The notes below the pieces were generated by a model that saw only the letters and a program-made list of their open reading frames with translations, was not told where the DNA came from and made no database searches. Made by a program: the position numbers and the translations under genes. This document shows positions 866 to 59,542 of a DNA stretch of 64,000 nucleotides, piece after piece. The number at the start of each line of letters is the position of its first letter. The first letter of the stretch is position 1. The DNA lies in the IMG/VR virus record IMGVR_UViG_3300036770_006296, positions 62,001-126,000 of that record; one strand, written 5' to 3'.

Positions 866-2380
866 ATGAAAAAACAAGTATTATCTTTCAACGAATTTAT
901 ATTCGAAGCTTATAATTCAGTATCTAGAATAATGGAAGGAGAAGTATCCGGAGCTGAAGAATTGATAGAAGCTATAAGTAAATTGGACAAAGCCGGATTA
1001 TCAGCAGAGGCCAAGAAACAGTTAGGCAATTTATCAGGAATAGCTAAAGCAGTTCAAACTACTGAAAATCCAAATGCCGAGAAACATCTAGGAGAAGGCT
1101 TACTAGGGGTTTTGGATAATCTAACAACAACCGGTGTTGAAATAACAGGTATCGTATCAAAGGTTAATACTATTACCTATGACAATCTAATTGCTGGGCA
1201 TGTTTTACTGGAGGATGATAAAAGAGTTAATCTATTGGATTTCTTATATCTTATTAATAGTGAAAACTGTTACAGTAAAATCAATATAGGAGCTTTTGAG
1301 GAAGATGGAAAATTAGAATGGAGCAAGATTCAAACTGATAGAAGATTTACCTTAGCAATGGAGGATTACAGGAAAACAGCAGGTGGCAAAAGATTGAAAC
1401 CTGGAGCAGCTAAATTTGGCAACTTTATTGGATCTTTCTTTTCAAGAGACCCTAATGTTGAGAAAAAAACTAAAGATAGTGTTTACTTAACAGGATCTGG
1501 ATTATTAGGAAATGAAGTTATAACAGGTATCGAAAGCGGAGTTATAAAGACAGAAAAATCTGTTTCCACTTATAAAGATATGGCTCTTGGAGGTAAAAGT
1601 AAAAAAGGAAGAGATAAAAAAGGGTTTTCTAATATTGGAGGAGATAAGAGCGTAATTACTGGATATAATATTGCTCTTCCTTTAGGTGCTGAACTAACGC
1701 CCAATCAAAAATTCCCAACTAAAGGAGCTACTAAAGTATCTAAGAATCCTAAGGCTTACTTTAGTCTTGTTCTTTATACTATGGGACAATCAGAAAAATC
1801 AAATAGAGAAATACCATTTAGTGATTTAGTACTCATAGAAAAAATGAGACCTACTGGCGAAACTATCGTTGAATATACGCTTGATATGTACAACAATGAC
1901 GAAAATGGTAAGCCTCTATTATTTGCTGTGGATTCATCAGTACTTACTGCAGCAGGGAAGGACAACATTAAAGCTGCCATAGAGCAATTTTATGCAATTG
2001 AATCTATAGAGATTCTAGGATTTGCTTCTCAAGAAGGTGCGGTAGATCATAACACTAATCTTTGTAAGGCAAGAGCAAAAGCAGTTGCAGACTTTGTAAA
2101 AAGTGTAAAAGAATGGAACATTCCTGCTACTAGTGTGACTTCTTCAGATACAGCTAACATTCAACCAAAATCTCCAGCAGCAACCGAAACAGAGAGGAAG
2201 AAATGGAGAAAAGTTCAATTTAAAATTAAAGGTACTAAAACAATTACTAGACCTGGGGAAGAAAACTTTATTGAATATGTGCCTACTACTGGTAAATTTA
2301 ATCCAGATAAAGTTGATATCTACCAAACAATTATAACTATGGAAGTTAGCGCTAGATCAACTAGAGTTAAAGGAAGATAA
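866..2380 (+). CDS. CTS-bearing protein with C-terminal OmpA-like peptidoglycan-binding domain
   Basis: IEILGFASQEG..HNTNLCKARAKAVADFV...RKKWRKVQFKI fits the OmpA_C pattern; N-term MKKQVLSFNEFIFE; LP upstream. Confidence 0.6.
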   Translation: MKKQVLSFNEFIFEAYNSVSRIMEGEVSGAEELIEAISKLDKAGLSAEAKKQLGNLSGIAKAVQTTENPNAEKHLGEGLLGVLDNLTTTGVEITGIVSKVNTITYDNLIAGHVLLEDDKRVNLLDFLYLINSENCYSKINIGAFEEDGKLEWSKIQTDRRFTLAMEDYRKTAGGKRLKPGAAKFGNFIGSFFSRDPNVEKKTKDSVYLTGSGLLGNEVITGIESGVIKTEKSVSTYKDMALGGKSKKGRDKKGFSNIGGDKSVITGYNIALPLGAELTPNQKFPTKGATKVSKNPKAYFSLVLYTMGQSEKSNREIPFSDLVLIEKMRPTGETIVEYTLDMYNNDENGKPLLFAVDSSVLTAAGKDNIKAAIEQFYAIESIEILGFASQEGAVDHNTNLCKARAKAVADFVKSVKEWNIPATSVTSSDTANIQPKSPAATETERKKWRKVQFKIKGTKTITRPGEENFIEYVPTTGKFNPDKVDIYQTIITMEVSARSTRVKGR

Positions 2381-2395
2381 AAAATATGACACAAT

Positions 2396-2425
2396 AAAAA
2401 AGGATCCTCTAGGGGATCCTTTTTT
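2396..2425. terminator. bidirectional intrinsic terminator
   Basis: AAAAAAGGATCC-TCTAGG-GGATCCTTTTTT between convergent genes. Confidence 0.85.
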
Positions 2426-2439
2426 GTTTTATACTATTT

Positions 2440-2874
2440 CTAGTTTATTGCAACCACTAAGTAATATTTGCCATTCTTTTCTACTGACTCTACCCAGAAA
2501 CGATTTCCCTCAATGTAGGGTACATAATTACGGAATGTATCCTGTCCTAGCATTTTAACTAAGGAATTACATAATCCATCGACCTTATAATTTTCTGGCT
2601 TCTCAGAAAGCTCCCAAATTTGGTGGAAGTAAGCGTAGTTTTTACCTTTAACTATTTCTTTCCCATCGACCTCCTGGTCAACAAATTTAATACAGCTTTC
2701 TTTTAAAGTTGAGTCGAGTTCAACCTCATGGTTGAAAAACTGCGTGAGACTTTGGTCAAAAGAGACCTTAATCTTGTCGAGTCCTACAAATAAAGGCTGA
2801 GGACCATTACTAAAGCCTTTGTTATTAATTCCAATCAAGGATAAAAATAACAGTGATAAACCTAAATTTTTCAT
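2440..2874 (-). CDS. secreted protein (Sec signal peptide), possibly CAP/SCP-like
   Basis: MKNLGLSLLFLSLIGINNKGFS signal; EP on - strand at ~2900-2940. Confidence 0.65.
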   Translation of the reverse strand: MKNLGLSLLFLSLIGINNKGFSNGPQPLFVGLDKIKVSFDQSLTQFFNHEVELDSTLKESCIKFVDQEVDGKEIVKGKNYAYFHQIWELSEKPENYKVDGLCNSLVKMLGQDTFRNYVPYIEGNRFWVESVEKNGKYYLVVAIN

Positions 2875-2987
2875 AACATAAATTTTAAATTGTTAGACAT
2901 CTCAAATATAGAGCATTATCTACTGATAAAAAAAGGATTCTTGGAATTTATTTAAAATAGAGATATATAATAGAAAAACTAAAAAAA

Positions 2988-4268
2988 ATGAAAAAACAGG
3001 TATTATCGTTCGCCGAATTCGTGTTTGAAGCATATAACACTATGAATGAGGAAGACAAAGTTACAATAGGATCTTTTGATCCCCTAAAAAAAACCCTAGG
3101 AGGGGGATTAAGTTTTAATAAAACTGAGACTGAAAGATTTAAGTTAACAATCGACAGACTAAATATGCTTAATCCTTCTACAAAGGTAGCTGAAGAGGCT
3201 CTTGTAAGAGCAGAAGGTATAACAGAGAAGATAAACCAATCATCAGAAGGGGTTAAGATATCATCAGCAGGAATAACACAGGCTGTTACCGTTACAAACA
3301 AATATGGATGGTTAGTAAATGGTACATGCAGAGTACAAAATGATATTACTGCCGATTCTAGTGTAGCTGAAGGAGATTCTCCTGCTTATAATGGAACAGA
3401 TGGCACTGATGTAGTTGTGGCACCAATAGCATCAGTGTTAAAAAAATTGTTTGCACATAACCTAGATTCAGCTAATGACTTGTTAGGGAAATCAAAAAAG
3501 GAACTTAAAAACGACTCAAATTTTGGAACAAAAGGTAAGAGCAAAGGGAAAAGTGAAGTGTTTTATACTATTGATGAAGACTCATTGAAAGGAGATGTTA
3601 TACAAATTATTAAATTTGAGGGGGAAGTCCCAGGAACTCCAACTGGAGAATATGGATTTGGATTCCCTGTTTATACAATTGCAGAAAATCCAGAAGGAGG
3701 TCTTGCAATTGAGACCGGAACTAACGAGATATCTAAGGATATTTACGATGTGGTTCTTCCCCCAGATCCAACAGCAACAGTTGTGACTGTAGAGAATAAG
3801 CCTTACAATTCAACGGGAGTGGATTTCTTTGAAGAAAATGCGGTTGAGATTGGTGAGGATGGTATGGCAGCTCTTAGAGCTATTCTATCCGAATTTAATA
3901 CAATTTCAAAAATCGTAGTTAATGGAGGAGCATCTAGTAAACCAACTTCCAGAGCAGGAGGAAACGAGAAACTAGCTAAAGATAGAATGGCTGCTGGAGT
4001 TGCTGCTTTGACCCAAATGAAAAAAGATGGTGTTGCTCAGCTAGCTGGTGCTACTATTTCTGCAGGTGAAGCAAAAGTACAGGCTGCAGCACCTTCAGAA
4101 AGCGATCCTAAGAATCAACAGGTTTCTTTTGTAATCTCTGGAACAATTAAAAAAATGGTGGAGAGCACAGATACAACACCCGTTGTTATAAAGAAAGTTG
4201 ATTCCAAGATGGCTCAGGTAGTAACATTGAAAAAGCAATATTTATATTGTAGTTATAATATATCTTAA
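2988..4268 (+). CDS. paralog of 866..2380, degenerate OmpA-like C-terminal domain
   Basis: N-term MKKQVLSFAEFVFEAYN; IVVNGGAS...NEKLAKDRMAAGVAAL...KNQQVSFVI; LP upstream. Confidence 0.6.
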   Translation: MKKQVLSFAEFVFEAYNTMNEEDKVTIGSFDPLKKTLGGGLSFNKTETERFKLTIDRLNMLNPSTKVAEEALVRAEGITEKINQSSEGVKISSAGITQAVTVTNKYGWLVNGTCRVQNDITADSSVAEGDSPAYNGTDGTDVVVAPIASVLKKLFAHNLDSANDLLGKSKKELKNDSNFGTKGKSKGKSEVFYTIDEDSLKGDVIQIIKFEGEVPGTPTGEYGFGFPVYTIAENPEGGLAIETGTNEISKDIYDVVLPPDPTATVVTVENKPYNSTGVDFFEENAVEIGEDGMAALRAILSEFNTISKIVVNGGASSKPTSRAGGNEKLAKDRMAAGVAALTQMKKDGVAQLAGATISAGEAKVQAAAPSESDPKNQQVSFVISGTIKKMVESTDTTPVVIKKVDSKMAQVVTLKKQYLYCSYNIS

Positions 4269-4281
4269 TATCAAAGAACAC

Positions 4282-4315
4282 AAAAAAGCCTATCTTTTGG
4301 ATAGGCTTTTTTTTT
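4282..4315. terminator. bidirectional intrinsic terminator
   Basis: AAAAAAGCCTATC-TTTTG-GATAGGCTTTTTTT. Confidence 0.85.
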
Positions 4316-4328
4316 GAGATAAGGAAAT

Positions 4329-4775
4329 TTATTCATTACCAGTGGATAAATTTCTACTAAAGTTGTTGTCTATGATAATTCCATAACGAACCATCCCGTT
4401 TTCTTTGGTAGCAGTTGCACAGAATTCGGTAAATTCACATTTTTTTAAAGCTGCATCATCCATATACAAAACTTTTTTAAGGTATTCCTTGTAAGCTGTA
4501 ACTAATTTTTCGGCTTCTACCTTTTCCTCGTTGGCTGTGTTTACCATGCCTCCTTTTTTAGTTCCGTAGCAATCTGGATACCCTGCCTCTGCCTGACTTG
4601 TAGCTCTTGTAGCAAAATTTAATGTCGTGTCCAATTTCATACCCGGAAATTGCTTATACATTTCAGAGATTAGCAGACTCTCGAATTTTTCAACTTTAAA
4701 GTTGTTGGCTTTTTGTGCTTTCAATCCCGTTACTGATACCAGGATGACAGCTAAGATTAAAAATAGATTTTTCAT
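4329..4775 (-). CDS. secreted protein, remote paralog of 2440..2874
   Basis: MKNLFLILAVILVSVTGLKA signal; shares LD(S/T)TL and (K/E)NG..(Y) C-terminal strand; EP on - strand ~4800-4845. Confidence 0.65.
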   Translation of the reverse strand: MKNLFLILAVILVSVTGLKAQKANNFKVEKFESLLISEMYKQFPGMKLDTTLNFATRATSQAEAGYPDCYGTKKGGMVNTANEEKVEAEKLVTAYKEYLKKVLYMDDAALKKCEFTEFCATATKENGMVRYGIIIDNNFSRNLSTGNE

Positions 4776-4860
4776 AACTTTATTTTTTAATTGTTAGACC
4801 ACTCAAATGTAGAGCATAACCTATAATAAAAAAAAGGATTTCTAAAAAAATAAAGCCACA

Positions 4861-4906: not shown

Positions 4907-5188
4907 TTAAGCGTTAGCCCAAACAAATCCACCAGCAGTTTTCATGATTCCACGAACCACTTTAGAGATTGAGCCAGTGTTAACTCCTGTTGCTCTTTCA
5001 GCATCAGACATTGAGTTGTACTTTCTGATTCTTCTACCTCTTGGGGTAAGCTGGATAACTGCAATAGTATTTCTATTACTAGTTTTAGATTTAGTAACTA
5101 CTGCCTTAGTAGCTTTAGGAGCTGTTTTAGAAACGGCTCTAACAGTCTTAGCCGTAGCCTTAACAGTTTTCTTTGTTTTTGTACTCAT
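4907..5188 (-). CDS. NUMOD1 HTH DNA-binding protein with K/A/T-rich basic N-tail
   Basis: VIQLTPRGRRIRKYNSMSDAERATGVNTGSISKVVRGIMKTAGGFVW is a typical NUMOD1 motif. Confidence 0.8.
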   Translation of the reverse strand: MSTKTKKTVKATAKTVRAVSKTAPKATKAVVTKSKTSNRNTIAVIQLTPRGRRIRKYNSMSDAERATGVNTGSISKVVRGIMKTAGGFVWANA

Positions 5189-13810: not shown

Positions 13811-14488
13811 ATGAATTGCAATTTAAGTATAGTTATTCCTTGTAAAAACGAGGAAGATATAATAATAGAAACTTTAAAGTCTATAAAAAAAAGAGAGAAA
13901 TACAAAATAATTGTAGCTGACTGCTCTACCGACAAAACCAAGGAATTGATAAAAAATCACGATGCTTCTATAGAAATAGTAGATGGTGGATTACCCGCAG
14001 TAGCAAGAAATAAAGGAGCTTCTCATTCATCATCTGATCTCATACTCTTCATGGATGCTGATATGAACATATCAAATATAGATCTAGATGACATAATATC
14101 AGATTTTGAGAAAAAAAATCTTGATCTCGCTACTTGTAAGATAACAGTAGATGGATTTTTCTACAAGATACCCTATTTTTTATTCTATATAGCTCAAAAA
14201 ATAATCTCATTAAAAACTCCATTCGCTGTGGGAGGGTTCATGCTTTTTAGAAAGAGTGAATTTGATAAAATGTGTGGATTTAACGAGAACGATAAGTTTG
14301 CAGAGGACTATCATCTTTCAATGAAAATAGACCCTAGAAAATTTAAAATATACAACAAAAATATCTCAACATCAAACAGAAGACTTAAAAATAAATCAAT
14401 ATTCTACATGGTAAAAATGATGACTCTTTGCTGGATTAATAGGTACAATGATGACTTCTATAAAAAAGATTACAACTACTGGAAATAA
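13811..14488 (+). CDS. glycosyltransferase family 2
   Basis: SIVIPCKNEE...IIVADCSTD...ARNKGA...LFMDAD...GGFMLFRK..F...FAED. Confidence 0.9.
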   Translation: MNCNLSIVIPCKNEEDIIIETLKSIKKREKYKIIVADCSTDKTKELIKNHDASIEIVDGGLPAVARNKGASHSSSDLILFMDADMNISNIDLDDIISDFEKKNLDLATCKITVDGFFYKIPYFLFYIAQKIISLKTPFAVGGFMLFRKSEFDKMCGFNENDKFAEDYHLSMKIDPRKFKIYNKNISTSNRRLKNKSIFYMVKMMTLCWINRYNDDFYKKDYNYWK

Positions 14489-15252: not shown

Positions 15253-15600
15253 CTAAGCTCCTAATCTTTTAACCATCAATTTAAAGAGCCTCATACTATC
15301 AATTCCAGGTAGATCGGAATCCTGGGGATCATCAGTTCTAAACTCTTTAAGAATCACTTTCTGAATACCTTCGAACTCTGTGTCTTTTGGTATATCCCAA
15401 AAAGAGATGTAATATATGTTTATAAAATCTCCCCTAAAAGTGACTCTTGGCGGAATATGAAGTACACCGCTTATGTATAGAACATTATATAAGCCTCGCT
15501 TTTTCGTAACGGGGACGGATACTACTATTCTATCATCAATCAGATCTGCTCTATACCCAAGCTCCTCAATTTCACCCAAGAATTTCTTTGTCACATTCAT
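15253..15600 (-). CDS. terminal member of LRR-20 array; conserved ends, non-LRR core
   Basis: KKFLGEIEELGY...GIDSMRLFKLMVKR. Confidence 0.8.
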   Translation of the reverse strand: MNVTKKFLGEIEELGYRADLIDDRIVVSVPVTKKRGLYNVLYISGVLHIPPRVTFRGDFINIYYISFWDIPKDTEFEGIQKVILKEFRTDDPQDSDLPGIDSMRLFKLMVKRLGA

Positions 15601-16040
15601 AAAAATACCCCTTGTTTAACCATAAGCTTAAATAATCTCTTGGTGTGTATATCATCTATAGATCCTTCCCATGATTCACCCCAATCACCAGATGTGCTAA
15701 ACATATATGTTCCACCCCTTTGATACCCAAGCATAATCTTACTCTTTCCGTTATTGAAAACAGTGGAGGGATGTATCTTAATACCTTGGTCGTATAATCC
15801 CAAAACAATATTGCCACCATTGTTAAATTGAACACCCTCAGGAATCTCCTGTAGCTCCGTTAGATGAACATTACCCTTGTTATTAAAGATAACACCAGAA
15901 GGCAGAGACTTTAAGTGATTAATGCCCACGTTCCACTTGTAAGCAAGCCCATTAGATCCAGTGATCTCAATCTCGTTGCCCAAGATATTATAAGTGATCT
16001 TATCACTATCTAACTGTTCTATAAATTCTTCCCTTGTCAT
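15597..16040 (-). CDS. LRR-20 array protein, ~3 degenerate repeats
   Basis: MTREEFI...LPSGVIFNNKG...KRLFKLMVKQGVFL. Confidence 0.85.
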   Translation of the reverse strand: MTREEFIEQLDSDKITYNILGNEIEITGSNGLAYKWNVGINHLKSLPSGVIFNNKGNVHLTELQEIPEGVQFNNGGNIVLGLYDQGIKIHPSTVFNNGKSKIMLGYQRGGTYMFSTSGDWGESWEGSIDDIHTKRLFKLMVKQGVFL

Positions 16041-16504
16041 ATAAATAAGCCTCTTTTAATCATCAAGTTCAATAACCTCTTACTATCTATTCCCTCTATG
16101 TTACCTTCCCAATTTTTAAACCATACAACATAATTCCCCATTAATGACTCCAAATAGACACTCCCTTCATTCTTAAACTCCACACCAGGCGGAAGGGTTT
16201 TTAATGAGTCCAAATAGACACTCCCTTCATTCTTAAACTCCACACCAGGAGAAATGGTTTCTAATGAGTTCAAATAGACACCCCCTTCATTCTTAAACTC
16301 CACACCAGGAGGAAGGGTTTTTAATGAGCTCAAATAGACATTCCCTCCATTCTTAAACTCCACACCAGAAGGAAGGGTTTCTAATAATGAGTTCAAAAAG
16401 ACAGTCCCATTCCTATCTCCTCTAGTCACCACTAGCTTATCTCCTTTTATCTCGTAGGAGTAACCTTCCTTATCTAACTTCTTTATAAACTTTTCTTGTG
16501 TCAT
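16037..16504 (-). CDS. LRR-20 array protein, 4 repeats
   Basis: VxLxSLxTLPPGVEFKNEG units at 60-bp period. Confidence 0.9.
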   Translation of the reverse strand: MTQEKFIKKLDKEGYSYEIKGDKLVVTRGDRNGTVFLNSLLETLPSGVEFKNGGNVYLSSLKTLPPGVEFKNEGGVYLNSLETISPGVEFKNEGSVYLDSLKTLPPGVEFKNEGSVYLESLMGNYVVWFKNWEGNIEGIDSKRLLNLMIKRGLFI

Positions 16505-16947
16505 ATAAATAAGCCTCTTTTAATCATCACGTTCAATAACATCTTACTATCGATACCTTCTATGTTACCAGTCCATGTATAAATCCATCCTCTGATTAGT
16601 GATTCCAAATAGACACCACCTTCATTCTTAAACCCCACACCAGGGGAAATACTAGTTAGTGATCTCAAACTGACATATCCCTCATTATTAAACTCCATAC
16701 CAGATGGAAGACTAGTTAGTGAATCCAACCAGAGATCCCCTACATTCTTAAACTCAATACCAGGAGGAAGTGTAGTTAATGAGTTCAATTCGACATATCC
16801 TTCATTCCTAAACACCACATCAGAAGGAAGACTATCTAGTAATCTCAAATCGACCCACCGTTTATGATTAATAACTATCTTATCTCCTTCTATCTTGTAG
16901 GAGTAACCTTTCTCTTCTAATATCTCTATAAATTCTTCTCTTGTCAT
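16501..16947 (-). CDS. LRR-20 array protein, 4 repeats
   Basis: Same N-cap, repeats and C-cap; ATGA overlaps. Confidence 0.9.
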   Translation of the reverse strand: MTREEFIEILEEKGYSYKIEGDKIVINHKRWVDLRLLDSLPSDVVFRNEGYVELNSLTTLPPGIEFKNVGDLWLDSLTSLPSGMEFNNEGYVSLRSLTSISPGVGFKNEGGVYLESLIRGWIYTWTGNIEGIDSKMLLNVMIKRGLFI

Positions 16948-17336
16948 ATAAACATTCCCTTACTTATCATGTAGTTCAATAGCCTCTTATTATCTATTCC
17001 TTCTATGTTACCAGTCCATTTATGAAAGTATCCTCCGATTAATGATCCCAAATAGACATCCCCTCCATTCTTAAACACAACACCAGGAGGAAGGGTTTTT
17101 AATGAATTCAAAAAGACATTGCCATTATTCCTAAACTCCACACCAGGAGAAATGGTTTTTAATAAGTCCAAACTGACATAACCTTTATTCATAAACACCA
17201 CTTCAGGAGGAATGGTTTCTAATGAGCCAAAAATAAAACCCCCAATTAAACCCCCTACAACCACTATCTTATCACCTTCTATATTGTAGGGGCAACCTTC
17301 CTTATTTAATATTCCTACAAACTCTTCTCTTGTCAT
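16944..17336 (-). CDS. LRR-20 array protein, 3 repeats
   Basis: Same architecture. Confidence 0.9.
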   Translation of the reverse strand: MTREEFVGILNKEGCPYNIEGDKIVVVGGLIGGFIFGSLETIPPEVVFMNKGYVSLDLLKTISPGVEFRNNGNVFLNSLKTLPPGVVFKNGGDVYLGSLIGGYFHKWTGNIEGIDNKRLLNYMISKGMFI

Positions 17337-17848
17337 ATAAACACACCTTGCTTAATCATCAAGTTCAGAAGCCTCTTACTATCTATTCCCTCTATGTTAC
17401 CTTCCCATTTACTAAACCGAACAAACCGCCCTCCAACTAATGATCTCAAATCGACATCCCCTTCATTCTTAAACTCCACACCAGGAGGAAGGGTTTTTAA
17501 TGAGCTCAAATTGACACCCCCTTCATTCCTAAACACCACGCCAGGAGAAATGGTTTGTAATGATGACAAATCGACATACCCCTCATTCCTAAACACCACG
17601 CCAGGCGGAAGGGTTTTTAATGAGCGCAAATAGACATGCCCTTCATTCTTAAACTCCACACCAGGGGGAAGTGTTTCTAATGATCTCAAATCGACATCCC
17701 CTCCATTATTAAACTCCACGCCAGGGGGAAGGGTTTGTAATGAGCGCAAATAGACATCCCCTCTATGAGTAACAATTATCAGATCTCCCACAATCTCGTA
17801 GGAGTAACCTTTCTCTTCTAATATCTCTATAAATTCTTCTCTAGTCAT
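17333..17848 (-). CDS. LRR-20 array protein, 5 repeats
   Basis: Same architecture. Confidence 0.9.
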   Translation of the reverse strand: MTREEFIEILEEKGYSYEIVGDLIIVTHRGDVYLRSLQTLPPGVEFNNGGDVDLRSLETLPPGVEFKNEGHVYLRSLKTLPPGVVFRNEGYVDLSSLQTISPGVVFRNEGGVNLSSLKTLPPGVEFKNEGDVDLRSLVGGRFVRFSKWEGNIEGIDSKRLLNLMIKQGVFI

Positions 17849-18288
17849 ATAAATAAGCCTCTTTTAATCATCACGTTCAATAACATCTTACTATCTACCC
17901 CTTCTATGTTACCTTCCCATTTACTAAAATAACCCCCAACTAATGATCCCCATTTACTAAAATAACCCCCAATTAATGATCCCAAATTGACATTCCCTCC
18001 ATTATTAAACTCCACTCCAGGAAGAAGCTCCTCCACATGATATAAAATAGCATCCCCACCATTATTAAACACCACACCAGAAGGCATAACTTTTACACTC
18101 CTTAAGTCGACATCACCTTTATTATTAAACTCAACATTAGGAGGAATGCTACTTATTGAGCTTAGCCAAACATTGCCATTATTATCATCGATCCTCCCAG
18201 TATTAACCACTATCTTATCACCTTCGTTACCGTAGGTGTAATAGTAATCCATCTGTTCTAATACATCTATAAATTCCTCTCTTGTCAT
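17845..18288 (-). CDS. LRR-20 array protein, 3 repeats plus 33-bp tandem duplication
   Basis: GSL(I/V)GGYFSKW twice (17916-17981). Confidence 0.9.
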   Translation of the reverse strand: MTREEFIDVLEQMDYYYTYGNEGDKIVVNTGRIDDNNGNVWLSSISSIPPNVEFNNKGDVDLRSVKVMPSGVVFNNGGDAILYHVEELLPGVEFNNGGNVNLGSLIGGYFSKWGSLVGGYFSKWEGNIEGVDSKMLLNVMIKRGLFI

Positions 18289-18980
18289 ATAAATAAGCCT
18301 CTTTTAATCATCAAGTTCAGAAGCCTCTTACTATCTATTCCATCTATGTTACCTTCCCATTCATCAAATCGACCACCAAATAATGAATCAAAATAGACAT
18401 CCCCTCCATTCTTAAACTCCACACCAGGAGGAAGGGTTTCTAATGATTTAAGATAGACATCCCCCCAATTATTAAACTCCACACCAGGAGGAAGGGTTTT
18501 TAATGATCTCAAATCGACATCCCCTTCATTCTTAAACTCCACACCAGGAGGAAGGGTTTTTAATGATCTCAACCAGACATCCCCTCCATTCTTAAACTCC
18601 ACACCAGGAGGAAGGGTTTCTAATGAGTTCAAATTGACATACCCTCCATTCTTAAACTCCACACCATGAGGAAGGGTTTTTAATGAGTGCAAATTGACAT
18701 ACCCTCCATTCTTAAACTCCACACTAGTAGAAAGGGTTTTCAAAAAATTCAGAAAGACATTGCCATTATTCATAAATACCACCCCAGGAGGAAGGGTTTC
18801 TAATGATTCCAAATTGACATTCCCTCTATTATTAAACTCCACACCAGGAGGAAGGGTTTGTAATGATTGCAATTCGACACTCCCATATAACCCTCCTCCA
18901 GTCACCACTAGCTTATCTCCTTTTATCTCGTAGGAGTAACCTTTATTTTTTAATATCTTTATAAAAGCTTCCCTAGTCAT
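18285..18980 (-). CDS. LRR-20 array protein, 8 repeats
   Basis: 60-bp repeats visible line by line over 18361-18890. Confidence 0.9.
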   Translation of the reverse strand: MTREAFIKILKNKGYSYEIKGDKLVVTGGGLYGSVELQSLQTLPPGVEFNNRGNVNLESLETLPPGVVFMNNGNVFLNFLKTLSTSVEFKNGGYVNLHSLKTLPHGVEFKNGGYVNLNSLETLPPGVEFKNGGDVWLRSLKTLPPGVEFKNEGDVDLRSLKTLPPGVEFNNWGDVYLKSLETLPPGVEFKNGGDVYFDSLFGGRFDEWEGNIDGIDSKRLLNLMIKRGLFI

Positions 18981-19444
18981 ATAAACACCCCTTGTTTAAT
19001 CATCAAGTTCAATAACCTATTACTATCTATTCCATCTATGTTACCTTCCCATTCATCAAATCGACCACCAAATAATGAGTCCAATTCGACCTCACCTCCA
19101 TTCTTAAAAACAACATCAGGAGAAATACTAGTTAGTGATTCTAAAACGACATACCCTCTATTATTAAACTCCACACTAGTAGAAAGGGTTTTCAAAAAAT
19201 TCAGAAAGACATTGCCATTATTCATAAATACCACACCAGAAGGAAGGGTTTTCAAAAAATTCAGAAAGACATTGCCATTATTCATAAATACCACATCAGG
19301 AGGAATAGTATCTAATTCTTCCCACTCTTCTATTGAATCCAAATAAACATCACCATCTTCTGTAACCACTATCTTGTCCCCTTCAATCTCGTAGGAGTAA
19401 CCTTTAAGATCTTCTAATACCTTGATAAATTCTTCCTGTGTCAT
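18977..19444 (-). CDS. LRR-20 array protein, 4 repeats
   Basis: Shares a 71-bp identical block with the preceding gene. Confidence 0.9.
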   Translation of the reverse strand: MTQEEFIKVLEDLKGYSYEIEGDKIVVTEDGDVYLDSIEEWEELDTIPPDVVFMNNGNVFLNFLKTLPSGVVFMNNGNVFLNFLKTLSTSVEFNNRGYVVLESLTSISPDVVFKNGGEVELDSLFGGRFDEWEGNIDGIDSNRLLNLMIKQGVFI

Positions 19445-19471
19445 ATAAATAATATGTTTTAATATATTTCA

Positions 19472-20056
19472 TTAAAAATCTAATATTTTTAAATTTCCAG
19501 AACCGCTATAGCCAAATTGATCCCTATGCAAATCCATTCCTGGCTGAGATGTATTCCTCATCTTTCTCAGGTCTTCTATCCCTAAAGTGTCCAGATATTT
19601 TTTCCATTTGTCCGAGAACTTAGAAAAAATCTTTATATACCTTTCCAAACAAACTTTCCATCTTTTCCATATATTCTTTATTTCTATGGTTGAATTCTCA
19701 AGGAGATTCGAAATTATATCTAAATTACTTTGGCTTAAATCCTGTGATAGGATTTCTTCTAGATCTAATTTTGGACTCAAACTCCAAAGCCAATTGTCCA
19801 GTATATCATATTCCCTTCCAGCTTGTTTCGTGTCTAATTTCTCTATTGAGATCCAATCTTTTCCTTCGCCATAAACCACGGGAAAAATGGAAGAATCCAT
19901 TTTTAATAATTCTAAATACCACTTTTCGATTGTTTCGTATCTAGTTTTCTTGAAAACTCTATCAGTATGTAATGGATCATAGAAAACATCGTGCTCAGCC
20001 CCACTACCAAAAGAAGGGCTTTCAAAAAAATTTTCAAATATCACTATATGCTTCAT
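19472..20056 (-). CDS. protein-kinase-like fold protein with CTS
   Basis: FGSGAEHDVF...VFKK (Gly loop, Lys), DLHRDQFG (catalytic loop), LKILDF; MKHIVIFENF. Confidence 0.55.
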   Translation of the reverse strand: MKHIVIFENFFESPSFGSGAEHDVFYDPLHTDRVFKKTRYETIEKWYLELLKMDSSIFPVVYGEGKDWISIEKLDTKQAGREYDILDNWLWSLSPKLDLEEILSQDLSQSNLDIISNLLENSTIEIKNIWKRWKVCLERYIKIFSKFSDKWKKYLDTLGIEDLRKMRNTSQPGMDLHRDQFGYSGSGNLKILDF

Positions 20057-30291: not shown

Positions 30292-31314
30292 ATGGCAAGA
30301 ACAAAAAAAGCAGAAGGGTCGGTAACGACCGAGACAACGGCTAAGAAAGGTCTTAGTGAAGAGACAAAAGCAAAGATCTCTGAGGCGTTAAAACGCAGAA
30401 AGACTTCAGTGGTCGAAGCAGCGGAAGCGCTATCTCCTAAGTTGGTAGCGGATGAGTCCAAAATCAAGGAGGAAGGAAACATCGTTACTCTTAACGACTA
30501 CTTCAAAGTCGAGAAGGGGACTTTCGAGATACTCAAGCACAACATCGGCTATGGTATCAATACGATGCTTATCGGGGCAACGGGTACTGGAAAGACGGAA
30601 GTCGTGGCTAACATCGCTAAGGTGTTCAATGTTCCGCTGACTATCTTCGACATGGGTACAATGACCGATCCTGTAATGGGACTTGTGGGTACTCACGTCA
30701 TCACAGTTGAGAATGGGGTGACTAAGTCGGAGTTCAAACGCTCTCGCTTCTCGGAACTCATTCAGCAACCAGGTATCATACTCTTAGACGAGATCTCCCG
30801 AGCCGGAGCGATGGCTAACAACCTTCTCTTCCCTTGTCTCGACTTCCGTAGAGAGTTACCGATGGAGTACTCGTTCCACGACACAACTCCAATCCCGGTT
30901 CACCCACAGTGCGTATTCTTCTCAACGGCTAACATGGGAAGTCAATATACGGGAACTCACAAATTAGACCGTGCCTTACTTGACCGTTTCATGCTCATCG
31001 AAGTAGACTCGATCAAACCAGAGGACATCATCGCAACACTAACCGCAGAGTTTCCGAAAATCACTAAGACGAAAATCAAGAAGTTGGTAAGCGTGTTCAC
31101 CAAAATCAACAAGGAACACGACGAGTTCAAAATCTCGTTCAACCTCTCAGTTCGTCACCTTAAGACTATCGCCAAATTGGTCTCTAACGGCTTCACAATC
31201 TACGACGGTTATGTCGCTCTTTGTAAAGGTCTCGGTAGTCAAGAAGGTTTGAAAGCGATTAACGCAATCTTGGACGATGCTAAAACCTCAACGGATACAG
31301 ATACAGAATCCTAA
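30292..31314 (+). CDS. MoxR-class AAA+ ATPase (CobS/CbbQ/NorQ-like)
   Basis: GATGTGKT, ILLDEISR, NMGSQYTGTHKLDRALLDRF. Confidence 0.9.
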   Translation: MARTKKAEGSVTTETTAKKGLSEETKAKISEALKRRKTSVVEAAEALSPKLVADESKIKEEGNIVTLNDYFKVEKGTFEILKHNIGYGINTMLIGATGTGKTEVVANIAKVFNVPLTIFDMGTMTDPVMGLVGTHVITVENGVTKSEFKRSRFSELIQQPGIILLDEISRAGAMANNLLFPCLDFRRELPMEYSFHDTTPIPVHPQCVFFSTANMGSQYTGTHKLDRALLDRFMLIEVDSIKPEDIIATLTAEFPKITKTKIKKLVSVFTKINKEHDEFKISFNLSVRHLKTIAKLVSNGFTIYDGYVALCKGLGSQEGLKAINAILDDAKTSTDTDTES

Positions 31315-31433
31315 TTCGTAAGGACTCAACAGGACTGGCGGCAAAACACCGCCAGTCTTTTTTTTGAAATCATTTTTTTCTCTAAGTAGAATTTTCTATA
31401 TTAGCTATGTAAACCAATTAAAACAAAAAAACA

Positions 31434-32984
31434 ATGGGTAAGTATGGATATGGATCTTGGGGCTCAGGCTACGGTAGGAAGACTTGGTCTTCAACATCGG
31501 GCTGGGAGAACTCACACTACGGAGGGTACAATCGACTAATTTACGATTATCCCTTCATCAAGTTCGATTATAAGGCAAACATCGAAGTCTCGCAAGACTT
31601 AAGAACCCAATTAGGTATCTGGTCGGCGGAAAAGCTTATCAAGATGTATCTTATGAAATGTAAGGAGAAAGGACTTCTTAAACGTTTAATTCGTGAACGT
31701 ATAACTAAGAAAAACTTTCTTGGGCAGGAAAAACATTACGACGTTCTTAAGCTAGATAACGAAGTCGTTCTAGAAGCGGTGATGAAAGAGTTCAAAGAAT
31801 TTGCTCCTCTCTTCGACCACTATCGTAATGAGATACTTTCGAGTAGCCTACAAATCGAAGTTCCGCCACCAGGAAACGAAGGTGGAGGAGGACAAGGTAA
31901 AGGCGAAGGGGAAGACAAAAAAGAAGGCCAAGGTAAAGGAAAGGGTGAAGGCGAGGGAGAAGGTGAAGGAGAAGGTGAAGGTGAAGGTGAAGGAGAGGGC
32001 AAAGGTAAAGGACAAGGTAAAGGACAAGGCGAAGGGGAAGGCGAAGGGGAAGGCGAAGAAGGTAGAGGCGAGGGTAAAGGAAAACCGAGTAAGAAAGGCG
32101 GAGGTTGGGGACCTTCGGATGGTGATGCTCCGGACTTCAAAGAACTTGAACGAGTACTTAAGGAAATGTCGGAACAAAAACCTTTCGAGAGCTTTAAAGG
32201 TCTCGGAGCAGAATGTAACCCTAAATTCGTTCCACCAAAAAAGAATGCGAAAGACTACAAGTTCAAGACCGATGAGATTAGAAATGCCGAGATGATGCTC
32301 AAACAACTCGACATCAGTTTTGAACCAAAGAGTGACGAAGTAAAGAACCTTAAACTCGGTAAGCTTGACACTTCAAAATTGGCAGAAGTACCCGCAGGTA
32401 ATATCTCCGTCTACAAACAAACTTTGGAGGATCAAGATACGAAACCATTTGCGGTATGTGTGTTGGCAGACATGTCGGGTAGTATGCAAGGTGCTAGACT
32501 CGATACTCAACTTAAGGTACTTAACGCTTTATATCTTGCCTTAAGCGAAATTATACCGGAAGAGGACCTACACATTTACGGTCACAGTGGAAATTCGTCA
32601 GAACCTAAGATATACACCTTCTGTAATCCGTATCACCCAGACTACCGAAAGAATATTCAAGACTATTATAGGATAGAGAATAACACTAATTACGACGGGA
32701 TTGTTATAGAACAGGTACACAAAAAGATACGTGAGAAAACAGATCGCCCAGTAATTCTGATTAGTCTTTCTGACGGTCAACCTTGTGATAGCGTGGCAGA
32801 CATGAAACGAATTCTTGAAAGAGCTAGACGAGACTCATTCGTTACAGTAGGTATCGGTATTGGTACAGACTACGTCAAAAAACTCTACACTTATTCGAGA
32901 GTGGTACACGACGAAAAGCTACACGAAATGCCGAGAGAGGTAGCGGGAATTATCAACCATGTTGTTAAAGCCGAATTCAAATAA
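31434..32984 (+). CDS. vWA (MIDAS) protein, CobT-like, with (GE)n linker
   Basis: [13 protein letters not shown]; long GEGEGE tract. Confidence 0.88.
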
Positions 32985-33150
32985 ATCCATATCCATACCC
33001 GAGAAGGGGAAGACTTCGGTCTTCCCTTTTTTTTGTGGGCTAAACCTTAGTCCTGCCGGCAGATTCTCTGGGGAACCCCAGGAAACTGGATACAGAGATC
33101 ATTTTTTTCTTTAATTAGAATTTTCTACATTAGCTATGTAACCAATTAAT

Positions 33151-33867
33151 ATGAAAATACTAGGATTTAATTTCCTTACTCTAAGACAGATAATATTTTT
33201 AAACGAGTTCACTTATGGCAAGTGGACTCTTAACAAGAAGACTGGACTGGTCGATATAGAAGGAGATTTCAATTGTTCAGATAAAAAATTAACCGGCTTT
33301 AAAGGTGTTCGGTTTGGAGTGGTTACTGGGAGTTTCTATTGTTACGATAACAATCTCACAAGTCTTGAGGGAGCGCCACAAAAGGTTGGATGGTATTTCG
33401 ATTGCTCCCATAACTCTCTCACAAGTCTTGAGGGAGCGCCACAGAATGTTGGGAGGGATTTCCGTTGCTACAATAACAAGCTCACAAGTCTTGAGGGAGC
33501 GCCGCAGAAGGTTGGATGGAGTTTCTATTGCCCATATAACAGGCTCACAAGTCTTGAGGGAGCGCCACAGGAGGTTGGAGGGTGTTTCTATTGCTACAAT
33601 AACTCTCTCACAAGTCTTGTGGGAGCGCCACAGGAGGTTGGAGGGAGTTTCGATTTCTACGGTAATCCGATCTCAGAGAAGACGTTAAAGTTGGTATGGG
33701 AGACGATGAGAGATAATAAGATCGACTATTGGTTTGCTTTATCGATACTTAAGAGCCAGATCGAGAGTGAGGATTGGAAGAAGATGTCTATAGGCTTAGA
33801 CGAGAGATTATCTAAAGACGCTCTGAAGGGTATTTCAATGATGGATCGGTTTGGACATTTTGATTAG
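33151..33867 (+). CDS. LRR-21 family protein with KG-tag
   Basis: 63-bp repeats FxCxxNxLTSLEGAPQxVG; ends KGISMMDRFGHFD. Confidence 0.9.
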   Translation: MKILGFNFLTLRQIIFLNEFTYGKWTLNKKTGLVDIEGDFNCSDKKLTGFKGVRFGVVTGSFYCYDNNLTSLEGAPQKVGWYFDCSHNSLTSLEGAPQNVGRDFRCYNNKLTSLEGAPQKVGWSFYCPYNRLTSLEGAPQEVGGCFYCYNNSLTSLVGAPQEVGGSFDFYGNPISEKTLKLVWETMRDNKIDYWFALSILKSQIESEDWKKMSIGLDERLSKDALKGISMMDRFGHFD

Positions 33868-33931
33868 AATCATTTTTTTCTTTAAATAGAATTTTCTACA
33901 TTAGCTATGTAATTAAAAACAAAATAAGGGT

Positions 33932-35440
33932 ATGGGTAAATATGGATATGGATCGTGGAATTCTTGGGGTTCCGGTTGGGGATCTGGAAAAGGAAAGGGT
34001 AGTGTTTCCGGATGGGAGAATTCGCACTTCGGTGGATACAACAGAGTACTAACGGATTACCCTTACATCAAGATCGACTTCGAACTTGATATTAAAGCGG
34101 GTAAAAAGATTGGAGAGGATCTCGGATCGTGGATGGGTGACAAACTAATCAAGCTTTATATTCTTAAAGCGAAGGAATTAGGTTTAATCGAGCAATTACA
34201 AACCGAGGTTGTTGAGCGGATGAAATTCTTGCAACTTAAAAAGTACGTAGTTGCAAAATTGGACGATGAGCTTGTGTTTTCCCTTATCTGTGGAGCTTAT
34301 ACCGAGCTAGCTCCTATGTTCGAACATTACAAAGAAGGGATCTTTGAAAGCACCCTAGAGATGGAAATAAAAGACGGAGAGGAGGGTAAGGGTAGTAAGA
34401 GCGATAAAGGAGAAGAGAACGAAGGCGAAGGTAAAGGAAAAGGTGAAGGCCAAGGCGAAGGCGAAAAACAGGGCGAGGGTCAAGGTGAAGGCCAAGGTGA
34501 AGGTGAAGGTGATGCAAAAGATTCACCAGGAAAAGGAACGGGTCAGCCTACAAGAAACGGTAAGACGATACATCAATACATGAACGATATAGGGGAGGTT
34601 AAACCTTATAGCTCGCATAGTTCGTTAAGTGACTTCTCCGAAAAACCTAAATTTATCTCGTTCGCTCAAAGAATAAAAGAGGAAGGAAAGTCTCCTTATA
34701 AATTCTCTCCAGTAGAGATAAAAGATGCCGAAGCTTTAATTAAGTTATTGGATATCGATTTTGACCCAAAAAGCGACGAGGTTAAAAATCTTAAGCTCGG
34801 TAAGCTAGACGTCAGTAAGATAGCAGAGGTACCCGCAGGTAATGTATCGGTCTACAAACAGATAGTCGAAGAACAAGATACCAAACCATTCTCCGTCTGT
34901 ATCTTAGCCGATATGTCTGGTAGTATGGGATATGGTAATCGGATAGCTTCTCAGCGTCATATATTAAACTCGCTTTATCTGGCAATGTCGCAGATACTTC
35001 CGCCAGATAAACTTTACATCTACGGACACAGCGGAGAATACACCCCGGAGATCTATACGTTCTATAGTCCTTACGATCCCGACTACGAAAGGAACATCAA
35101 ATACTACCAGAAAGTACATTGGTGTCAGAACTACGACGGTCCGGTTATCGAAGCTATCCATAAGAAGATACGAGAAAACTCAGAAGACCGTATTATCTTC
35201 ATATCACTATCCGACGGTGAACCAGCAGGTAACAACTACGGAGGTCTTAAAGATAACGAAGAGCTCAAAAGAATACTTGAGAGAGCTAGACGAGACTCAT
35301 TCGTTACAGTAGGTATCGGTATTGAAGCAGGCCACGTATCAAGCCTATACACATACGCCAAACCAGTATGGGATTTATCAACCCTACCGAAAGACGTAGC
35401 AGGTATCATCAATCAAGTGGTTCGAGCCGAGTTCAAGTAA
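33932..35440 (+). CDS. second vWA (MIDAS) paralog
   Basis: [15 protein letters not shown]; same [10 protein letters not shown]-term and GE linker. Confidence 0.88.
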   Translation: MGKYGYGSWNSWGSGWGSGKGKGSVSGWENSHFGGYNRVLTDYPYIKIDFELDIKAGKKIGEDLGSWMGDKLIKLYILKAKELGLIEQLQTEVVERMKFLQLKKYVVAKLDDELVFSLICGAYTELAPMFEHYKEGIFESTLEMEIKDGEEGKGSKSDKGEENEGEGKGKGEGQGEGEKQGEGQGEGQGEGEGDAKDSPGKGTGQPTRNGKTIHQYMNDIGEVKPYSSHSSLSDFSEKPKFISFAQRIKEEGKSPYKFSPVEIKDAEALIKLLDIDFDPKSDEVKNLKLGKLDVSKIAEVPAGNVSVYKQIVEEQDTKPFSVCILADMSGSMGYGNRIASQRHILNSLYLAMSQILPPDKLYIYGHSGEYTPEIYTFYSPYDPDYERNIKYYQKVHWCQNYDGPVIEAIHKKIRENSEDRIIFISLSDGEPAGNNYGGLKDNEELKRILERARRDSFVTVGIGIEAGHVSSLYTYAKPVWDLSTLPKDVAGIINQVVRAEFK

Positions 35441-49986: not shown

Positions 49987-50074
49987 AATAATTTCAATTA
50001 TTTTTCAGAATCATTTTTTTATTCATGTAGAAATTTCTATATTTGTAATGTTAATCAATTAAACAAAAACAATT

Positions 50075-50920
50075 ATGAAACATCACATTTTTCAGCAATC
50101 AGTTACAGGACGTAACGAAGTAGTAGACGCTTACCTAAGCGAAATCAACAAAATCTCGATGGTCAATCCGGACGAGGAAAAAGTTCTTTGCGACCGTATC
50201 ATCTCTGGCCAGAATGGCTTAGACGAAAAGGCTCGTCAAAGATTTGTCGAGGGCAACTTAAGATTTGTCGTATCGGTTGCGAAACAGTACCAAGGTTCGG
50301 GACTAGAGTTAATGGACTTAATCAACGAAGGGAATGTCGGCTTAGTTAAAGCTTCCCAACTATTCGACCCGACCAGAGGTATACGTTTCATCTCATTTGC
50401 AGTTTGGTGGGTTCGCCAGGCAATCATGGAGTCGCTAAAAGAGAAAGGGCGTTTGGTAAAACTCCCTCTAAATCAAATCAACGCTCAAAAGAAAATCTCC
50501 CGTGAAATGGACCAAATCCTAAAGACGGAAGGGTTCACATCGGTTGACTTGGCAGCGGCTTCTTTAGGACTCGAGCCGGAAAAATACCAAACACAATCTT
50601 CAGTTTCGCTAAGTACACCTATCGGAGAAGAAGACTTCACACTAGGCGATACTCTATCAGACGGAACAGTTTCAGATGAGGGATTAGAAAAACTAAGTTT
50701 TATCAAACAGATATCCGCAGTACTTAAAACGTTAGAGGAAAGAGAAAGCTTCGTAATCTCTAACTGGTTCGGAGTCAACGGTCAGTCACAAAGACCAAAA
50801 AGCGATATTGCAAAAGACCTCGGAATCTCAGAAGAGCGAGTAGAACAAATCTACCACAAAGCAATTCGCAAACTCAAAGCTTCTAACCGCTCTCGCCTAC
50901 TAAAACATTTTGTTTCATAG
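50075..50920 (+). CDS. RNA polymerase sigma70 factor, Bacteroidota RpoD/SigA-like
   Basis: NLRFVVSVAKQY, DLINEGNVGL, FDPTRG.RFISFAVWWVRQAI; region 4 HTH. Confidence 0.93.
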   Translation: MKHHIFQQSVTGRNEVVDAYLSEINKISMVNPDEEKVLCDRIISGQNGLDEKARQRFVEGNLRFVVSVAKQYQGSGLELMDLINEGNVGLVKASQLFDPTRGIRFISFAVWWVRQAIMESLKEKGRLVKLPLNQINAQKKISREMDQILKTEGFTSVDLAAASLGLEPEKYQTQSSVSLSTPIGEEDFTLGDTLSDGTVSDEGLEKLSFIKQISAVLKTLEERESFVISNWFGVNGQSQRPKSDIAKDLGISEERVEQIYHKAIRKLKASNRSRLLKHFVS

Positions 50921-58435: not shown

Positions 58436-58753
58436 ATGAAAAACACAGAAAAAAAACCAGTTGCTAAAAAAGCTACAAAAACCACTAAAGTTTCTAACAC
58501 CCCTGATTGGATGACTTTGGACAAGTTCGAAATGAGTTTCACCCACAAAGTTAGATTATTTAGAAATCTAAAATTGGAAACCACAAACTCCTACTGTGCA
58601 AGCCCAGGGACTTCCCTAAAGTTTGAAAAAATCAAAAATGAAGATAATACAATTGTCTTCCGGGTTCGCCGCAATGGCCGCCGCACCTTCTTCACCACCA
58701 ACGCGGAACTCCAGGCGCCAGCTGAAATCCCCGCTGAAATCCCCGCTGAATAA
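58436..58753 (+). CDS. basic protein family member 3
   Basis: DWMTLDKFEMSF...CASPGTSLKFE...RTFFTT. Confidence 0.85.
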   Translation: MKNTEKKPVAKKATKTTKVSNTPDWMTLDKFEMSFTHKVRLFRNLKLETTNSYCASPGTSLKFEKIKNEDNTIVFRVRRNGRRTFFTTNAELQAPAEIPAEIPAE

Positions 58754-58896
58754 CCGGGGTTTCACAAAACTTCAAAAGACCCTTCGGGGTCTTTTTTTGT
58801 GACCAAATTTTAGGACAGATCCTAATCCTCCTGAGGCACCCCTGGAACTTTACCATATATTCAGTTTTTATATTTAAAAAAAATTCTTATATTTGT

Positions 58897-58958
58897 AGTT
58901 CATAAAATATTTATTCTTTGGAGTAAGCCAGGAACCCTAGATTTATCTAGGGTTTCTT
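58897..58958 (+). ncRNA. candidate small RNA, copy 1
   Basis: TATATTTG 58888-58895, ORF-less body, terminator 58930-58958. Confidence 0.5.
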
Positions 58959-59096
58959 GTGTGTAAAGAAATCTAGATCTATGGTAAATCTCCTGCGGAA
59001 CCCCAGGAAAAGAATCCAAAAAGATTCAAGAAATCGTTTTTATCTTTGTAGAAAAATCCATATATTTATATAGTTAATCAATTAAACAAAATAAAA

Positions 59097-59228
59097 ATGA
59101 AAACAGCAAATGTAATTGGAATGGCTTGGGTAGGAATTTTAATAGCAACAGTTATAGTTGCTTTAGGTTTCACAGTTTATCAAGTATGCACGGGGAACTA
59201 CCACGGCACAGCAAGTTTTGAGTTTTAA
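59097..59228 (+). CDS. 43-aa TM peptide, not in track
   Basis: ...WVGIL...QVCTGNYHGTASFEF. Confidence 0.7.
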   Translation: MKTANVIGMAWVGILIATVIVALGFTVYQVCTGNYHGTASFEF

Positions 59229-59270
59229 TTAAAGTTTTGAATTTCAATTAAAAAAAATTCTTATATTTGT

Positions 59271-59332
59271 AGTTCATAAAATATTTATTCTTTGGGATAA
59301 ACAAGAAACCCTAGATTCATCTAGGGTTTTCT
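59271..59332 (+). ncRNA. candidate small RNA, copy 2
   Basis: TATATTTG 59262-59269; near-identical body; terminator 59303-59332. Confidence 0.5.
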
Positions 59333-59470
59333 GTGTGTAAAGAAATCTAAATCTATGGTAAAACTCCTGCGGCGCCTCAGGGATGAAGAATCAAAAAAGA
59401 TTCAAGAATCATTTTTATCTTCGTAGAAAAATCCATATATTTATAATGTTAATCAATTAAAATCTATCAC

Positions 59471-59542
59471 ATGAAAAAACCACTTGTAATCTTCATCACA
59501 CCAAATGGATTAATGGTTATAGAAGATATCATAGCTAACTAA
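59471..59542 (+). CDS. 23-aa peptide
   Basis: MKKPLVIFITPNGLMVIEDIIAN between EP and terminator. Confidence 0.45.
   Translation: MKKPLVIFITPNGLMVIEDIIAN

Follow-up and report, generated by a model that had tools for sequence, protein, structure and literature searches.

Why would a phage keep, side by side, two pairs of convergent genes in which one partner carries a short leader and an OmpA-like domain and the other a signal peptide? The question is raised by a locus near the left end of the window analysed here, i.e., a stretch of 64,000 nucleotides corresponding to bases 62001-126000 of a linear 206,617-bp viral contig of IMG/VR (about 36% G+C, 81% complete according to CheckV). The open reading frames (ORFs) of this contig include tail-fibre-like genes, a helicase, ribonucleotide reductase-like and topoisomerase-like genes and a gene of the sigma-70 family; GenBank phages showed no DNA or protein match to the region, nor to its proteins A1 and A2. 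The A1 gene (866-2380, + strand) encodes a 504-aa protein composed of a leader, an orphan N-terminal region, an OmpA-like domain and a C-terminal tail, and converges on the B1 gene (2440-2874, - strand), whose 144-aa product is predicted to be secreted and to adopt a minimal CAP/PR-1-like fold. The A2 gene (type Ab; 2988-4268, + strand; 426 aa), with an A1-like leader, a different middle region, an OmpA-like domain and a tail of its own, converges in turn on the B2 gene (type Bb; 4329-4775, - strand), which encodes a 148-aa, predicted secreted protein with a CAP-like fold. All four ORFs are as reported in a preliminary description of this DNA, which saw two tandem modules, each with a + strand gene converging on a - strand gene.

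The evidence described below makes it fairly probable that A and B interact physically and function together, and that the pair evolves and is transferred as one unit. A more complete mechanism, in which A would be delivered by the virion to the periplasm and bound there by a cognate, early periplasmic B, resulting in superinfection exclusion of the kind exerted by Spackle of phage T4, is put forward tentatively, with chances a little short of even.

Pairing and exchange of the A/B cassette in related phages

Homologues of A1 (48) and B2 (88) were collected from metagenomes and thirty-odd genomic contexts were examined. A scan of IMG/VR with A1 alone returned nothing; distant phage contigs were found with the alignment of a distant A protein (A6). 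Synteny of the pair in related phages, which the preliminary description had proposed as a check, is clearly conserved: each of the 36 distinct A genes that are complete and have a sufficient 3' flank is followed, within ~60-90 nt, by a convergent signal-peptide ORF of 142-200 aa. The pairing includes distant jumbo-phage contigs of 134-373 kb from IMG/VR, where single or tandem cassettes are surrounded by different neighbours and the leader of the A branch, M..(K/R)PVFE(S/N)F.EF, is analogous but not the same. Two tandem cassettes with this distant leader were observed at L073 2790-6737 and L074 2167-6080 (IMG/VR contigs of 349 and 99 kb), three of their four B genes being of the B2 type.

In closer relatives the locus is delimited by a pair of 700-aa paralogues on one side and a NUMOD-like gene on the other, and holds one or two cassettes belonging to at least five types, namely A1/B1, Aa/Ba, Ab/Bb (module 2 of the window), Ac/Bc and Ad/Bd. 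Proteins A1, Aa and Ad are homologous over their full length and the same applies to B1, Ba and Bd (hhalign 99-100%); a true tandem duplicate is therefore present in some relatives. Type Ac (675-686 aa), the partner of the CAP-type protein Bc, showed no profile link to the other A types.

Each A type always occurs with its own B type in the relatives, and the type found in module 2 does not follow the relationships seen in module 1. The A1 and B1 proteins of the window are 81 and 89% identical, respectively, to those of contig L001, yet module 2 is of type b in the window and of type a in L001; the same switch (b versus a) separates L003 from L010, whose A1 and B1 proteins share 75 and 79% identity. 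Between L005 and the window the flanks are 93-99% identical while A1 and B1 reach just 52 and 48%, and L005 has no module 2. Pairwise identities of A1 vary with those of B1 (rho 0.57), as compared with a rho of -0.23 for A1 and the gene located 43 nt upstream. The A and B types are thus swapped together, in line with the effector/immunity-like pairing that had been suggested for this locus.

Control regions, leader and domains of the two partners

The two partners are preceded by promoter-like elements of different classes. The box AGATATATAA lies ~25 nt upstream of both A genes (840-849 for A1, where the motif is exact, and 2961-2970 for A2, both on the + strand), and in the relatives a GATATATA box is placed 20-30 nt upstream of every distinct A-gene start (33/33). 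This box also precedes many other genes, including a tail-fibre-like gene. The B genes are preceded by AATCC-T(7-8)-N-TCTA(T/C)ATTTG followed by the 5' untranslated region (UTR) box GTCTAACAATT; promoter (AATCC-T7...TATATTTG in B1) and UTR box together span 2888-2939 for B1 and 4789-4840 for B2, on the - strand. There are 34 copies of the B-promoter class in the genome, compared with 0-1 in Markov-shuffled controls, and 28 of them, with the form AATCATTTTTTT-N-TCTA(C/T)ATTT(G/A), are on the + strand between positions 23093 and 60158 of the window, spaced roughly 1 kb apart and each before small ORFs; one copy (50009-50045) drives the sigma-70 family gene at 50075-50920. The -7 element of this class, TAnnTTTG, is one that we take to be the Bacteroidota housekeeping type. 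From these motifs we infer that the host-like B-promoter class is early and that the GATATATAA-box class is late and dependent on a phage sigma factor. A scan with the sigma-70 consensus gave fewer sites than the shuffled sequences and is uninformative for this organism. A duplicated element private to these genes was considered as an explanation of the B promoter and abandoned because the promoter belongs to the general 34-copy class, only the GTCTAACAATT box in the 5'UTR being specific to B genes.

Between the convergent genes of each module there is a bidirectional intrinsic terminator (2393-2428 and 4282-4312, both strands), consisting of a palindromic hairpin with an A-run on one side and a T-run on the other. 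Both hairpins are stable on either strand (z -4.2 to -5.4; for the first, -5.4 on the + strand and -4.2 on the - strand) and none of 200 shuffled sequences was as good. The late-type promoters, early-type promoters and two-way terminators of the preliminary description were all recovered in this way.

The leader of A1 comprises 17 codons (866-916, + strand; MKKQVLSFNEFIFEAYN) and resembles the capsid targeting sequence (CTS) of T4. It is shared with A2 at 15 of the first 17 residues, and the codons of the two leaders show 6 synonymous and 2 non-synonymous differences; since most differences are synonymous it is the peptide itself that is conserved, and recent gene conversion was dropped as the source of the similarity. 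Among 24 homologues, positions M1-F8, E10, F11, E14 and Y16 are invariant. The T4 CTS is MKTYQEFIAE (PMC8442874), and the leader core SFNEFIFE of A resembles its core, TYQEFIAE. Internal proteins of T-even phages are diverse and conserve the CTS alone (PMC3012670). By this analogy the conserved short leader on otherwise divergent A types, which had been described as CTS-like, fits a packaging signal.

The same pattern extends well beyond the A genes. The motif F/Y-x-(E/D/N/Q/S/G)-F/Y is present within residues 3-16 of 54 of the 310 ORFs of the genome (17%), as compared with 3.9% per window of residues elsewhere in proteins, and many of these ORFs open with MKHIKLFE.F (examples start at 866, 2988, 6674, 61536 and 63335 in the analysed stretch). 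It was found in 26 of 45 ORFs with the late-type box and in 28 of 265 others (odds ratio 11.6, P 1e-11), whereas the 29 ORFs preceded by early-type promoters all lacked it. The leader may thus serve throughout the genome as a signal for targeting or processing.

The preliminary description had assigned an OmpA-like C-terminus to both A proteins. The domain itself was recognized: A1 matches Pfam OmpA (PF00691) over residues 352-446 with an E-value of 1.9e-6 and 28.6 bits (cut-off, 27.2 bits), and the profile of the A1 family (24 homologues) retrieved OmpA C-domain structures from PDB (4erh, E 1.3e-10). A2 alone had no Pfam or PHROG match; its family aligned with the OmpA region of A1 with an hhalign probability of 98.5% (E 2e-15). 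The domain was delimited at 1919-2263 (aa 352-466) in A1 and at 3813-4151 (aa 276-388) in A2, on the + strand, and occurs in every sequence-related A type (A1, Aa, Ab and Ad), with PF00691 scores of 30.7 bits in Ad and 23.6 bits, below the cut-off, in Aa. Its position, however, is not at the extreme C-terminus, as a tail of ~40-50 residues comes after it in A1 and A2. The sequence of this tail differs by A type; in A1 (2264-2377, + strand; aa 467-504) it is the predicted site of contact with B1. The domain motif reads G-F-A-S-Q-E-G...N..L-C..R-A in A1 and G-x-A-S-x-(E/K)-G...N..L..R across the A types, with Ser at the place of Asp in the canonical G-x-T-D. In the OmpA protein of Acinetobacter baumannii, the residues that bind diaminopimelate (DAP) are Asp271 and Arg286 (PMC5974059).

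Neither a signal peptide nor a transmembrane (TM) segment was predicted in A1 or A2. A search of 1.84 billion representative sequences with the N-terminal 320 residues of A1 retrieved just 22 relatives, all of which belong to the A family and start to match just past a leader, and no relative outside this family.

Signal peptides were predicted on B1 and B2, as had been claimed for each - strand gene, with cleavage of B2 between ..GLKA and Q. AlphaFold (AF2) models of both proteins were confident, with predicted local distance difference test (pLDDT) values of 82.5 (B1) and 80.8 (B2). In fold searches with B1, the top 36 rows after re-alignment to PDB structures (VIA rows) were all members of the CAP superfamily (Z 5.2-7.7), the best being GAPR-1 (Z 7.7; root-mean-square deviation, rmsd, 3.5 A over 103 residues), and the top Foldseek matches were mostly CAP entries. 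With B2, the top 31 rows were CAP proteins (Z 4.5-6.8), headed by SAV1118 (Z 6.8; rmsd 3.6 A over 101 residues). In the models both proteins thus resemble minimal versions of the CAP/PR-1 alpha-beta-alpha sandwich. As the Z values are middling, this assignment leans on the consistency of the hit lists; it is further supported by the language-model neighbours of B1 and B2 and by type Bc of the relatives, a bona fide Pfam CAP protein (PF00188, 36.2 bits) and the sole B type matching this family. B1 and B2 matched no Pfam family at E-values up to 0.1 and no PHROG. The CAP cavity is characterised by a conserved His/Glu tetrad. This tetrad is not conserved in the B proteins, with one invariant His (H84) in the B1 family and none in the Bb family, and the mature proteins (~118-125 residues) are shorter than the bacterial CAP members with which they were compared.

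It had also been proposed that the two modules arose by duplication and that their partners diverged in parallel. Duplication holds for the A genes, but no sequence similarity was detectable between B1 and B2: BLASTP gave no alignment, hhalign comparison of their profiles gave a probability of 17% at most (0.3% without the signal peptides and with host sequences added), and neither could be linked by profile to the Pfam-CAP type Bc. The two share a fold class, a signal peptide and the ~50 nt of promoter and 5'UTR only, so that homology between them is argued from fold class and context alone.

Relatives of the B proteins were found in bacteria. Proteins of the B2 type (55-66% identity) are encoded in chromosomal regions of metagenome-assembled genomes (MAGs) of Flavobacteriales (Crocinitomicaceae, Crocinitomix, Lishizhenia and Cryomorphaceae), next to a (usually divergent) gene for a 482-aa AAA ATPase and to housekeeping genes (TonB/ExbBD, LptC and asparaginase). 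In these genomes a B1-like gene lies directly downstream of the B2-type gene (hmmsearch E 1e-18 to 1e-20) or, in an alternative arrangement, both are fused into one two-domain secreted protein of 276-279 aa; pairs or fusions are located at L045 4001-5014, L056 3992-4822 and L065 3899-4732. B2 is nearer to these bacterial chromosomal genes than to B1. The phage B1/Ba/Bd family comprised only 31 clusters in a word search, on contigs that are phage-sized or smaller (up to 187 kb). The phage B genes probably have their origin in a pair of host periplasmic proteins, or are shared with it, and the locus would then be a case of the borrowing of a host periplasmic protein by a phage. The occurrence of these B2 orthologues points to Crocinitomicaceae and relatives, among the freshwater Flavobacteriales, as the likely host group of the phage.

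The predicted A1-B1 complex and the readings of the pair

Structure prediction of a cognate complex had been suggested as a further check and was carried out for a single pair, A1 (residues 18-504) with mature B1. Three runs gave values of the interface score ipSAE (interaction prediction score from aligned errors) of 0.89, 0.90 and 0.89, the best control reaching 0.00. Among solved complexes, 58 of 80 attained the mark adopted for this score, as did 2 of 110 mismatched pairs; this calibration holds only roughly for A1-B1, whose input alignments were made by ourselves. At least 88% of contacts are common to the runs and the pLDDT of the partner is 88 or higher. In the predicted interface, residues 467-480 of A1, in the type-specific tail, contact the B1 strand 82-89, and its core is a strand pairing of A1 472-480 with B1 82-89, which includes the His that is invariant in the B1 family. 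The model supports, and does not show, binding of B1 to the C-terminal tail of A1.

If the region is viewed as a polymorphic array built from one conserved two-gene cassette, found in jumbo phages of freshwater Flavobacteriales, it could work as follows. The leader would direct A into the virion, as the T4 CTS does for internal proteins, and at infection A would be delivered to the periplasm, where the OmpA-like domain might grip the wall and aid passage through the envelope. Early in infection, Sec-exported B would accumulate in the periplasm and clamp the matching A type by its C-terminal tail when this A arrives with later virions, as suggested by the predicted A1-B1 binding; the place and timing of this encounter are conjectural. 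The outcome would be superinfection exclusion, by the same logic as that of T4 Spackle against gp5, and competition among related phages may drive the replacement of whole cassettes, which is observed, and the carriage of two types. Given that a late A devoid of an export signal would have to meet an early secreted B, the most economical assumption is that A comes from outside with the virion; if it does, B would be a Spackle-like exclusion factor and the diversification of the cassette would be explained.

Several observations weigh against this mechanism. The packaging and ejection of A, the exclusion of phages by B and the early and late timing of the promoters are inferred. The leader motif is also carried by an AAA ATPase and by ~50 other ORFs and may mean, therefore, something besides packaging, and the contig, itself incomplete, yielded no T4-type prohead protease (PF03420). 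Binding of A to peptidoglycan is plausible and not assured because the DAP-binding Arg is retained but all A types have Ser in the position of the DAP-binding Asp. The B2-type genes of host chromosomes have no A partner and B-like genes unpaired with A are present in two other large phage contigs (L043 and L044); since B occurs without A in hosts and in phages, B proteins have a function that is independent of A. Finally, the joint inheritance of A and B could result from the conserved outer ends of the cassette acting as sites of recombination.

In a variant of this scheme the true periplasmic target of A would be the host Bb/B1-like protein, and phage B1 and B2 would be captured soluble decoys. 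During genome delivery the host protein would provide a docking point, with ejected A1 taking hold of one half and ejected A2 of the other, early-secreted B would mop up the A proteins of competitors, so that exclusion would operate through receptor mimicry, and the switching of whole cassettes would be a route of escape. We regard this variant as improbable.

An equally modest likelihood is given to a role of the pair at lysis, where late cytoplasmic A would reach the wall through holin lesions, as canonical endolysins do, and B, positioned beforehand in the periplasm, would regulate or buffer it, thereby timing lysis or guarding the cell against A released by its neighbours. The lack of an export signal and the wall-association domain of A agree with this role, as do the periplasmic location of B and its predicted binding to A. 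Tail-fibre-like genes and a gene that is probably of the endolysin type are driven by the box of the A genes too, and in the distant contigs a gene with a peptidoglycan-binding motif (endolysin-like) is found a few genes from the cassette. However, searches of A against Pfam, PHROG, PDB and the representative sequences revealed no hydrolase or other catalytic family, the invariant leader and its tie to one promoter class would have no explanation, nor would the diversification and swapping of cassettes in near-identical backbones, and there is no obvious benefit for a phage in making, early on, an inhibitor of a lysis factor that it produces late.

Slightly less credit is due to the view that each B gene is an independent moron of host origin which modifies the host envelope early in infection and whose link with A is structural only. 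The B2 orthologues (55-66% identity) beside housekeeping genes in Flavobacteriales chromosomes, the unpaired B-like genes of L043 and L044, and the fact that each B gene has a promoter and a terminator of its own can be read in this way. So can the conserved outer flanks, with box and leader on one side and the B promoter and UTR on the other, as the cassette would move as a unit because it is bounded by conserved sequences. Against it stand the pairing in 36 of 36 cases over very deep divergence and with different flanking genes, the high-confidence predicted A1-B1 interface with null controls, and the five A types that each travel with their own B type. That B senses A from secondary phages instead of blocking their entry, following the lysis-inhibition logic of T4, would be accommodated by the same binding model and compartment evidence, but B lacks a membrane anchor, neither a holin nor an antiholin was identified as its partner and no tie was found between B and lysis genes. 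We regard this last reading as very unlikely.

If A is a virion protein and B its secreted binder, as in the exclusion mechanism proposed above, the locus would represent a genetically linked, polymorphic superinfection-exclusion cassette whose specificity can be read from sequence. It would offer a handle on phage-phage competition in the abundant, uncultured phages of freshwater Flavobacteriales, provide a first function for minimal bacterial CAP/PR-1-like proteins and point to a widespread leader system similar to the T4 CTS, perhaps marking dozens of jumbo-phage proteins.

Genomic surroundings and comparison with known systems

Directly upstream of A1 are the genes of the two ~700-aa paralogues (P700; genome positions 58505-62823, L015), the second of which, P700b, a conserved neighbour, has its 3' end at 2-823 of the window (+ strand). 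These proteins have a leader, MKYLSLFDDF, related to that of A and two adjacent TM-like Gly-rich segments, and flank the cassettes in all close relatives; they showed no Pfam or PHROG match and their profile no match in PDB. On the right-hand side, a gene at 4907-5188 (- strand) encodes a 93-aa protein whose N-terminus is rich in Lys, Thr and Ala and whose DNA-binding C-terminus is NUMOD/I-HmuI-like, and constitutes the conserved edge of the cassette array in nearly all relatives. A further convergent pair was observed at the locus in other contigs (L023 4134-5540, L032 7662-8922 and L034 6377-7637), where a + strand gene for a 267-311-aa protein starting with M(N)NKHIKMFE.F faces a - strand gene for a 157-164-aa protein with a hydrophobic C-terminus and an early-type promoter like that of the B genes.

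Elsewhere in the window, a tandem array of ~9 small paralogous genes with overlapping stop and start codons and N-termini like MT(Q/R)E.FI..L..KGYSYEI occupies 15253-20056 (- strand), a region with strongly negative GC skew. A MoxR-type AAA ATPase followed by two paralogous ~510-aa VWA-domain proteins with Gly/Ser/Trp-rich N-termini is encoded at 30292-35440, within a segment (20-36 kb) of higher G+C (0.41-0.44) than the remainder (0.33-0.37). A phage-borne TerC-family membrane protein and a family-2 glycosyltransferase are encoded at 60177-60806 and 13811-14488, respectively.

No description of an A/B cassette of this type was found in the literature searched, and its components recall several systems. 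T4 Spackle (gp61.3) forms a complex with the tail lysozyme gp5 that leads to superinfection exclusion (PMC7677548). As proposed for B, Spackle is early, Sec-exported, small and periplasmic, and its target is a virion protein that acts in the periplasm and lacks a signal peptide; gp5 has, however, a lysozyme, whereas A has an OmpA-like domain and no recognisable enzyme, and B is CAP-like by fold search. To our knowledge, the T4 sp gene and gene 5 are neither adjacent nor polymorphic as a cassette. The internal protein loci of T-even phages share with A a short conserved leader on diverse and rapidly replaced late proteins; those proteins are, unlike A, small, basic and DNA-associated, have a cytoplasmic anti-restriction role and lack a linked secreted partner.

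Another phage-encoded exported protein, Ltp of Streptococcus phage TP-J34, mediates superinfection exclusion (PMC3952083). Ltp differs from B in being a lipoprotein of unrelated fold, from a temperate phage of Gram-positive bacteria, that does not form a cassette with its target. This target has been reported to be the tape-measure protein of the incoming phage. Among bacterial CAP members, BB0689, SAV1118 and the CAP domain of PrgA, all of them secreted, match the B1 and B2 models over ~100 residues (Z 5-7.7), and PrgA is a surface-exclusion protein of conjugation; B1 and B2 depart from the family in having no Pfam CAP match, no conserved tetrad and a shorter length.

Polymorphic toxin/immunity and colicin/immunity systems differ from A/B, where nothing points to a toxic A, the partners would occupy separate compartments and the two convergent promoters belong to distinct classes. 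They resemble it in their adjacent cognate pairs and tandem arrays, in the combination of conserved N-terminal with variable C-terminal parts, and in the replacement of whole cassettes within conserved backbones.

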